The translations under genes and the position numbers were made by a program. A stretch of DNA of 63,578 bases, counting the filler, from Hyphochytrium catenoides (Eukaryota; Protista; Hyphochytriomycota): NCBI GenBank assembly GCA_900088475.1. It is 9 parts of 9 records of this genome, joined end to end, with 100 filler letters (N's around TTAATTAATTAA, not from the genome) between each part and the next. Parts side by side here need not be neighbours in the genome. Positions count along the whole stretch, not along the records: positions 61,256 to 63,578 come from FLMG01002814.1; 8 more parts are not named here. The stretch is one strand, 5' to 3'. The notes under the pieces were generated by a model that was not told the origin of the DNA, did no database searches, and saw only the letters and a list, made by a program, of their open reading frames with translations. Shown here one piece after another: positions 61,106-63,578 of the stretch (within the stretch, counting starts at the first letter, position 1; the number at the start of each line of letters is the position of its first letter).

Positions 61106-61561
61106 CTAGAGGAAGAGTCGCAAACGGAACATAAGAGAGAAAGAGCCAGAGAGAGNNNNNNNNNNNNNNNNNNNNNNNNNNNNNNNNNNNNNNNNNNNNT
61201 TAATTAATTAANNNNNNNNNNNNNNNNNNNNNNNNNNNNNNNNNNNNNNNNNNNNGAAATTTCAGCAATTTGCTGATAGCGTATCGTTTAGCGTACCCCG
61301 GTGGAAGTGCTCTATAATAACGGGGTATATTTGGTTCTTTAATTTTAGTTATGGCTGCCAAACAGCCTCCAGGGAGTGCTTCGAAGGCGGGAATCTGTTC
61401 TTGTCTTATATTGAGCTGATCAGGTCTAAAGTTTTATCGGAAAAGCTCCATTAGTTCCAGAGACCTGGCAACGTTCCGGAAAGGAGATTTCCCCATATAT
61501 ACGTTGTACAGACAACTGTAGCACTTCCTGAGCCTCGCATCCGCTGAAGGTCCTAGTAAAA

Positions 61562-62411
61562 ATGCTTTCCGAAGACAATGATGGGGGAACAGAAAGGAAG
61601 TCTCCGAGGAGTCGTGCTGCTACGGACAATGATCAACCAGAAGAAGGCGACCTAGCGGTGTCTCCTCCTGCCAAAAGGCCTCGGGGCCGGCCCAACAAGA
61701 AGAGCTACTCCTATACAACCCCACCAGCAGCTACTCAGTCAAGACCATCTTTTGCTGATGCTCCTGTTGCGTCTACCTCACAGCAGGGTACAAATGTAAG
61801 CTCTAGGGGTGCCAAGATCGAGGATCAGGAGGAGGAGGATGGGTCTGCCCTTGACCAGATGGAGCCAGAGATGCAGAGGCTCCAAGGGCTGATACCAAAA
61901 TCGAGAACGGGAACCAAAAAAGTGATTGAGTACTTCAACACCGAAGACGGACGAACTCTACGAATGTAAGTGGTGGGAAGCAAACGGCCTTACGGGGGAG
62001 CGCTAGCTAAATAATATCTGTTGGCGGCCTTACAGGAGCCGAAGCTTTCATTGGATGAACAAACCGAAGAGGGACCGTGAAGGACGGACAGTCAGCAACC
62101 CCCGAGAGTGCCTTGTCTGCAACCACCGCACAGTCTACGCTTGCAATAGTTGCTTGCAATTCCTATGTATCAAAGGTGAGAGAAAGCACCACCGCTATCT
62201 TGGTACCTAGAAGAGCACTTAATACTCCCGCATGGTGTGATTTGACTACTCATCAGGGCGACAGAATAGAGAGTCTTGTTGGTATAATTTCCATAACCGC
62301 AAGGAGCTGAAACGCGAAAAAGACAAGGACGAGGCTCTGAAGGGAAAGGCGATGAAAGCAAGGGGTGGCAGAAAAAAGAACGAAGACCGCAAGAAGCAGT
62401 TCTCAAGCTGA
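61562..62411 (+). CDS. AT-hook + piggyBac-type Cys-rich zinc-finger protein, 3 exons: 61562-61965, 62036-62175, 62257-62411 (232 aa)
   Basis: GTAAGT..TTACAG (70 nt) and GTGAGA..CATCAG (81 nt) introns give one stop-free frame: KRPRGRP AT-hook, then RECLVCNHRTVYACNSCLQFLCIKGRQNRESCWYNFH, then a basic tail. Confidence 0.75.
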
Positions 62412-63578
62412 AGAAGTTGAATGGGAAGGAGTCTACAGCGAGGATGAAATTGGGGCACCGGCCACCAGCATTTAGCGTTGATGATGAACCCAATTCCCCT
62501 GTTGGCCCACATTTGAAGGTTTGTGGGTCTATGTAAACAGTGTCTTCCCGCCACCTCTAAGCAAATAATGCCATCTTTTAGCCTCCAAGCAAGTACTCTT
62601 CAGCCTCGTAGGCCAAGGCTCTTACAAGATAGACAAACAGTAGAGCAGTTGGAGGACTAGGAAGGACAAGGCAAAGGACAATCCCCTAGGCACTAATAAG
62701 TTCTGATGAAGTTCTACCTGATGGAGCAAGGTTTGTAACATCATAGCAGATGGCTGCTAACGGCCTGCAGCATTTTGTATTGTAATAATCAGGGAACTAC
62801 AGTTGAGTTAGGACGGTTCGACGCTGTCTCACTTTAACGTCTGCCTCCTTGGTTGTCTCATCATGATCTGTCTCTCCTCGGCCTTTAGTCCCCTCTCTCC
62901 TCTCTCTTTGTCTCTGTCTTCCTCTCTTTGTCTGTCTTTCTCTCTCTCTCTCATTTGCCTCTCTCTTCCCCCTCTCTCTCACGGTCAGCTGTCAGCCACT
63001 CTCTCTGTCTCTCTCTGCCCTTATCTGCTTCCCCTCTGTTTCTCTCTCTCTCTCTCTCTCGCTCGCTCTGTGTCTGTGTGTGTCTCTCTCTCTCTCACTT
63101 TCTCTCTCTCTCTCTTTCCCTCTCTGTCTCTCTGTCTCTCTCTCTCTCTCTCGCCCCTTCTCTAATCAGAATTTCGAAAGCGAAAAACTCCCGCGCTTTC
63201 TCTCCCACCCACCCGAAGGCCCTAAAACCTTTCCCAGAGAAGTACCAGGTACCAAAGCCAAAATATTCAGATCAAATGGTCAATAGGCCCACCCACCCAT
63301 GGTACTATTTTTCCTCTCCTTCCCTAGCAGCTCCCTTTCCTCATCTGGTCCGCCAGAAGGCAGCAGGAAATTAATCCAAAACATTAGTTTCATTTCTTTC
63401 CCTCAGAGCCTTTGCTGAATTAAGTTTGTTTCGCATCAATAGCAGTATTTCATGTTGATGGATCTGTCCGCCCTGGGTCAAGGCAAAAGTTTTCGCGGGA
63501 ACGGAAGGCGAGGAGGTCAGGTCCACTCGATTGTTAGGGCGTTTGACCTTTCAAGAGAGAGAGAGAGACAGAGAGAGA

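Follow-up and report, generated by a model that had tools for sequence, protein, structure and literature searches.

A probable three-exon gene on the plus strand

The window analysed here is a 63,578-nt stretch of DNA from Hyphochytrium catenoides, and the piece considered lies at its right end (61256-63578; 2323 bases, about 50% G+C, zero N). On the plus strand of this piece an open reading frame extends from an ATG at 61562 to a TAA closing at 61969, and this TAA sits inside a consensus splice donor (AAT/GTAAGT, the slash marking the exon boundary) that places the donor of intron 1 at 61966. A first-pass annotation had proposed a hidden spliced gene at this position, with two introns and a product of 232 residues, and our analysis upheld this structure, as the exons fit together in phase and the junctions are uniquely consensus-like. 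The features of the locus are listed below.

61496-61501, plus strand: TATA-like box TATATA, 66 nt 5' of the ATG, identified from sequence only
61562-61965, plus strand: exon 1, 404 nt (134 full codons and 2 nt), ATG with A at -3
61673-61702, plus strand: AT-hook KRPRGRPNKK, residues 38-47 with RGRP at residue 41, a motif read from the sequence
61966-62035, plus strand: intron 1, 70 nt, GTAAGT...TTACAG
62036-62175, plus strand: exon 2, 140 nt (46 codons), carrying the upstream His and five Cys of the finger
62049-62168, plus strand: first part of the predicted finger, from the His5 codon (62049) to the Cys44 codon (62166-62168), H-x19-CxxC-x7-CxxC-x4-C
62176-62256, plus strand: intron 2, 81 nt, AAG/GTGAGA...CATCAG/G
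62257-62411, plus strand: exon 3, 155 nt including the TGA stop
62277-62294, plus strand: last part of the predicted finger, Cys-Trp-Tyr-Asn-Phe-His (C-x4-H)
62295-62408, plus strand: Lys/Arg-rich tail, 16 K+R and 7 D+E in 38 residues

The exon lengths sum to 699 nt (404+140+155), which corresponds to 232 codons plus stop, and the intron phases of 2 and 1 agree. Open stretches of the three exon frames are confined to 61532-61966, 62007-62207 and 62241-62408, so that a continuous product needs both introns to be removed. Within each exon the annotated frame is stop-free and the other two frames hold 1-6 stops each. Enumeration of frame-compatible GT/GC..AG pairs returned many possible combinations, but the junctions listed above were alone in having an extended donor consensus together with a YAG/G acceptor, and for intron 2 the sole alternative GT donor was a weak one (TTG/GTACCT). 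We consider the gene model itself to be probably real. The product of this short eukaryotic gene of three exons appears to be a small nuclear protein that may bind DNA or chromatin.

The opposite reading is that no functional gene exists at this locus, which would then hold a decaying piggyBac-like remnant or a chance open reading frame whose 'introns' are coincidental GT..AG pairs. Frame-restoring pairs of this kind are indeed common by chance, the model is an orphan on a 2.3-kb contig that ends in a microsatellite, with relatives not found, and exon 2 lacked even a self-hit among 1.84 billion representative proteins. A coincidence of this sort would nevertheless have to account for extended consensus in both donors (AAT/GTAAGT and AAG/GTGAGA) exactly at the frame closures, for YAG/G at both acceptors, for introns of similar size (70 and 81 nt) with no other consensus-like pair available, for three exon frames free of stops where the other frames contain 1-6 each, and for a splice that places C-x4-H in register with the remainder of the finger. 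We therefore regard a non-functional locus as distinctly unlikely.

Both introns showed further features. Intron 1 ends in a tandem acceptor (CAG/GAG/; 62035-62038) in which a second in-frame AG occurs 3 nt downstream, and this second AG at 62038 would allow a NAGNAG variant that remains in frame with one codon dropped. Within the same intron, 12 nt of the acceptor region occur twice as a direct repeat, at 61985-61996 (CGGCCTTACGGG) and at 62025-62036 (CGGCCTTACAGG), with the AG present in the second copy only. If intron 2 is retained, the frame of exon 2 continues for 11 codons (62176-62210), including two adjacent His, before it reaches a stop, and the resulting 57-aa reading is a possible short isoform.

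The 5' end of the gene

An in-frame stop lies 10 codons 5' of the ATG, and the TATATA at 61496-61501 is a possible core promoter. Together with the A at -3, these elements would fit a gene starting at ATG 61562. An additional 5' exon suggested earlier (ATG at 61351, with a GC donor) proved to correspond to a 22-codon open reading frame and is best treated as speculation.

The contig begins only 306 nt 5' of the ATG, and this short upstream sequence raises the possibility that the three exons are the last ones of a longer gene, encoding a full piggyBac-like transposase or PGBD, whose core exons lie past the left contig edge. Two AGs between the in-frame stop and the ATG (61548-61549 and 61555-61556) could in principle act as acceptors for such a gene, but neither has a pyrimidine tract like those of the two accepted acceptors, and the A at -3 and the TATA-like box 66 nt upstream both argue for initiation at this ATG. 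The sequence encoded by exon 1 is likewise difficult to reconcile with hidden core exons, as its 134 residues are acidic, disordered and AT-hook-bearing, without similarity to the core. In piggyBat the linker between core and cysteine-rich domain (CRD) is shorter than 20 residues (PMC11707139), and here 134 unrelated residues would have to occupy that position. A longer gene of this type is in our judgement very improbable.

An acidic first exon with an AT-hook

The exon 1 peptide is acidic (pI 5.3), rich in Ser, Pro and Glu, and contains zero Cys and zero His. The AT-hook reported by the first-pass annotation is present in this peptide with a canonical core, as KRPRGRPNKK combines Arg-Gly-Arg-Pro with basic flanks, although the short Pfam AT_hook model reported no match on exon 1. 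No Pfam family, and hence no DDE_Tnp_1_7 core, was found on exon 1, and this blank agrees with the earlier statement that no transposase core occurs between the ATG and the finger. Relatives of exon 1 were absent from the word-index protein search, the PDB and the metagenome and viral contig scans, and the ESM Atlas assigned no family to this exon (best score 0.84).

Ligands, spacing and charge of the finger

The putative zinc ligands are distributed over two exons, with H5, C25, C28, C36, C39 and C44 in the exon 2 peptide, where H30 is to spare, and C7 and H12 in the exon 3 peptide. The whole pattern reads H-x19-CxxC-x7-CxxC-x4-C-x9-C-x4-H, and its eight ligands would be enough for two zinc ions. 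A spacing of H-x16 before the first Cys had been given previously; this figure was a miscount, the actual distance being x19. Since no Cys or His occurs downstream of the last finger His, the upstream His is needed to complete the ligand set.

Intron 2 splits the finger between its fifth and sixth Cys, and the motif had been described as completed only across the splice junction. Splicing does bring C-x4-H into register, but the word 'only' needs a caveat, as read-through of intron 2 also supplies two adjacent His.

With 10 K+R versus 4 D+E, the region of the finger is basic overall, exon 2 having a pI of 9.6, and the Lys/Arg-rich tail that follows is like a nuclear localisation signal and may function as one. 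Among 2000 dinucleotide-preserving shuffles of the piece, CxxC-x5-12-CxxC appeared in an open frame in 13, and the same arrangement with a fifth Cys 3-6 residues further on appeared in one; the Cys cluster is not a product of chance.

Comparison with piggyBac cysteine-rich domains

Loops between the fifth and sixth Cys of PF13842 domains are, we assume, usually 3-5 residues long, compared with 9 in this finger. Several local motifs that we take to be typical of PF13842 fit this finger, including a His-aromatic pair some 15-20 residues before R-x-C-x-V-C, and further on T-x-Y-x-C-x-x-C, L-C and C-aromatic-x-x-aromatic-H.

Two types of piggyBac CRD are relevant to this comparison. That of Trichoplusia ni piggyBac is described, in PMC5861402 as cited through PMC8086355, as CxxC-CxxC-CxxH-CxxC with a PHD-like fold, its binding site being a repeat close to the ends of the transposon. 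The PiggyMac CRD forms a circularly permuted cross-brace with ligands H701, C712, C715, C723, C726, C737, C745 and H749 (PMC8086355), and in the CRDs of PiggyMac, piggyBat, PLE-wu and PGBD2-4 a His precedes the first CxxC 'at a variable distance' (PMC8086355; PMC11707139). Cryo-EM of piggyBat showed a CRD of the PiggyMac fold class, akin to C1 and HIT fingers, that recognises, as a pair and in a sequence-specific manner, an imperfect palindrome within the left end (PMC11707139). The PiggyMac CRD is acidic, showed no DNA binding and bound the H3 tail weakly (PMC8086355).

As defined in PMC8086355, the ligand order of the PiggyMac/piggyBat class (upstream His, CxxC, CxxC, C, then C...H) is also that of the finger described here, and its predicted layout matches this class and not the T. 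ni piggyBac type. All eight ligands occur in the same order as in the CRDs of PiggyMac, PgmL, Tpb2, piggyBat, PLE-wu and human PGBD2-4 (PF13842), the x7 spacing between the CxxC pairs is shared with PiggyMac, and the finger has the same C-terminal position followed by a basic tail. In its basic charge it resembles the DNA-binding CRDs (PB CRD) and differs from the acidic PiggyMac CRD. The differences from the class as a whole are that the finger is not preceded by a DDE_Tnp_1_7 core, that the stretch from its fifth to its sixth Cys is longer (9 residues), and that it is split by an intron and has no significant sequence or profile match; in addition, the PiggyMac CRD ends in C-x3-H whereas this finger ends in C-x4-H. 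The earlier description of a piggyBac-type finger that binds terminal inverted repeats (TIRs) was therefore correct as to a CRD-like layout, but the class concerned is that of PiggyMac and piggyBat, in which DNA binding is not a given.

Family assignment of the finger

The one positive lead to piggyBac for exon 2 came from the ESM Atlas, where the first match (score 0.93) had 175 features in common with a PF13842 cluster. PF13842 was named on 13 of the 30 matches listed, the other 17 being unnamed, and the ten best named matches all agree, a degree of neighbour agreement that also arises for a third of shuffled proteins. The 'recognition' value of exon 2 was low (2138), with 91% of known-family proteins reaching a higher level. 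Clusters of short eukaryotic proteins (62-109 aa) with PF13842 are also listed in the Atlas, so that finger-only PF13842 open reading frames do exist in databases, probably for the most part as element fragments.

Profile searches gave different signals. In Pfam scans of exon 2 and of exon 3 on their own, with the domain split by intron 2, PF13842 did not appear at E<=10. For exon 2 the sole match was zf-B_box (PF00643; E 0.12, 12.9 bits versus a cut-off of 24.1). The intron-2 read-through matched an ANCHR-like B-box (PF22586; E 8e-4, 20 bits versus a cut-off of 27), with zf-MYST and zf-UBP also appearing below their curated cut-offs; the ANCHR-like B-box, the best Pfam match overall, depends on intronic codons and is still sub-threshold. 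AlphaFold2, run on the 57-aa read-through with no alignment, gave an uninformative model (pLDDT 44).

Sequence searches retrieved no relatives. With the 46 residues of exon 2, phmmer found no genuine relative among 1.84 billion representative proteins, returning one spurious match and no self-hit. A query of this length needs about 45 bits to reach E 0.001 in a library of 1.84 billion, and given this low power the blank excludes close relatives but not distant piggyBac CRDs. The word-index protein search with exon 2 retrieved no relatives, queries of the PDB by sequence, made with each of the three exons and with the read-through, returned nothing meaningful, and metagenome and viral contig scans with the 57-aa read-through were blank. 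By phmmer and PDB searches with exon 2 as query, neither a piggyBac-like transposase nor a PGBD was detected as similar in sequence. The piggyBac-type designation proposed for this finger thus agrees with the ligand layout of one CRD class and with the PF13842 neighbours in the Atlas, and is without a profile or sequence match to piggyBac.

The single spurious phmmer match, P0001 (761 aa, E 2.7e-11), was rejected as a translated tandem repeat (about 67 residues) in which 11 short CxxC-containing stretches were summed, and is a case of repeats inflating phmmer scores.

These results have to be weighed against the view that the gene encodes an ordinary lineage-specific nuclear protein with no transposon ancestry, its finger being a member of some other family (B-box, HIT, MYND or an undescribed one) and its likeness to a piggyBac CRD a matter of convergent Cys spacing. 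The only Pfam signals obtained were zf-B_box, ANCHR-like B-box, zf-MYST and zf-UBP, no piggyBac protein was retrieved by any sequence search, and the fold of the piggyBat CRD resembles HIT and C1 fingers (PMC11707139), so that spacing discriminates these families poorly. The Pfam matches were however all below curated cut-offs, and the best of them leans on intronic codons. Among the 30 ESM Atlas clusters nearest to exon 2, none was of the B-box, HIT or MYND families. Fingers of these three families have all eight ligands after the first CxxC. Here only seven ligands follow it, the spare His30 included, and the PiggyMac class offers a precedent for the upstream His that is present. A B-box (PF00643, PF22586) would share the first half of the pattern, CxxC-x7-CxxC-x4-C, but the second half of its ligand set is absent here and both scores (12.9 versus 24.1, and 20 versus 27) fall short; neither a score at or above the Pfam cut-off nor eight ligands after the first CxxC was found. 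On balance, an unrelated finger is rather unlikely, and the most likely ancestor of the finger is the C-terminal CRD of a piggyBac-like transposase (PiggyMac/piggyBat/PGBD2-4 class), the catalytic core having been lost.

Proposed function

The explanation that we prefer is a self-contained three-exon gene whose product of about 232 residues would consist of an AT-hook-bearing N-terminal half that is acidic and disordered, a basic cross-brace finger with two zinc ions, and a Lys/Arg tail. That this is a finger-only DNA-binding protein derived from a piggyBac tail is a tentative reading, to which we would give somewhat less than an even chance. Such a gene may stem from an element that underwent internal deletion, or it may be a host gene built from a transposase tail. 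The sequence itself shows the arithmetic of the gene model, the motifs with their charge, the non-random Cys cluster and the missing core; transposon ancestry, DNA binding and a repressor role are what we infer for this protein. The label 'repressor' is to be understood in the same sense, and 'domesticated' is not supported here, relatives being absent from every collection searched.

In the mechanism proposed, the basic tail probably carries the protein into the nucleus, where the AT-hook would lie in the minor groove at AT-rich stretches and the basic finger would read a specific site, possibly palindromic and perhaps as a dimer like piggyBat. Having no catalytic domain, the protein would not cut DNA and could act by site occupation only. 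In a genome that harbours cognate piggyBac-like elements, finger sites near their ends would be occupied and the transposase hindered, as KP does for P elements; if there are no cognate elements, the product may be an ordinary DNA- or chromatin-binding factor. Alternatively, the protein could be a chromatin reader, by comparison with the weak H3 tail binding of PiggyMac, but the PiggyMac CRD is acidic and the finger here is basic, which favours DNA over a chromatin-reader role. The more specific proposal of a functional host gene that retains the piggyBac DNA-binding tail only, combined with an AT-hook, and that either represses resident piggyBac-like elements or is a transcription or chromatin factor of a new type, appears unlikely.

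Comparison with known transposon-derived proteins

The closest parallel in concept is the KP repressor of the Drosophila P element, a protein of 207 aa that comes from internally deleted elements and competes with the transposase (PMC7776569). The likeness lies in a small protein that has a site-specific DNA-binding zinc domain without the catalytic part. KP differs in belonging to another superfamily and in having an N-terminal THAP finger where the present protein would have a C-terminal CRD; it is encoded inside an element with terminal repeats, whereas none were found around this gene, and repression has been shown for KP and is what we infer here.

Possible piggyBac ancestry would also relate the gene to the domesticated piggyBac genes (PGBD1-5, PiggyMac, Tpb2, Lia5 and KOBUTA), and the loss of catalysis would be shared with Lia5, PgmL and PGBD2. 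The domesticated piggyBac genes surveyed in PMC5381638 all retain the transposase core, with PGBD1 and PGBD5 having lost the finger, and their domestication rests on orthology, with a single copy at the same position in several species, and on Ka/Ks values that indicate selection (PMC5381638). Lia5 keeps both domains and lacks the catalytic residues (PMC3775806). In comparison with PGBD1 and PGBD5, where the core was kept and the finger lost, the gene described here would be the reverse, with the finger kept and the core lost.

If the piggyBac derivation is true, the THAP proteins (P element) and ZBED proteins (hAT), which are analogous derivatives of other superfamilies, would have a piggyBac equivalent in this gene. 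It would indicate that the piggyBac superfamily, as P elements and hAT do, can donate its site-specific DNA-binding module alone, with the host or a self-limiting repressor as the recipient. The gene would also provide a small natural protein for probing the targets of PiggyMac/piggyBat-class fingers, where DNA (piggyBat) and histone tails (PiggyMac) are the two candidates. The weight of the case is limited, as it consists of one orphan gene model, with relatives not found, on a contig of 2.3 kb.

Surroundings of the gene

TTAA-flanked inverted repeats were absent from the 2.3-kb piece, in which five TTAA sites occur and the best pair agreed at 7/16 bases, and any such repeats could lie outside the piece. 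Pfam found no family and no DDE_Tnp_1_7 core on the other open reading frames of the piece, and Rfam found nothing on it. Both hallmarks of a piggyBac-like element, the DDE_Tnp_1_7 core and TTAA-flanked TIRs, were thus absent within this piece.

An imperfect (CT)n microsatellite of about 260 nt (62893-63152) lies 3' of the gene, and its (GA)n complement forms the right contig end (63553-63578). These two microsatellites account for all long 'inverted repeats' reported, and the right contig edge is probably an assembly break in simple repeat. The sequence beyond the (CT)n microsatellite (63176-63540) holds no open reading frame with a family match and contains short C-rich motifs, of which CCCACCCACCC occurs twice.
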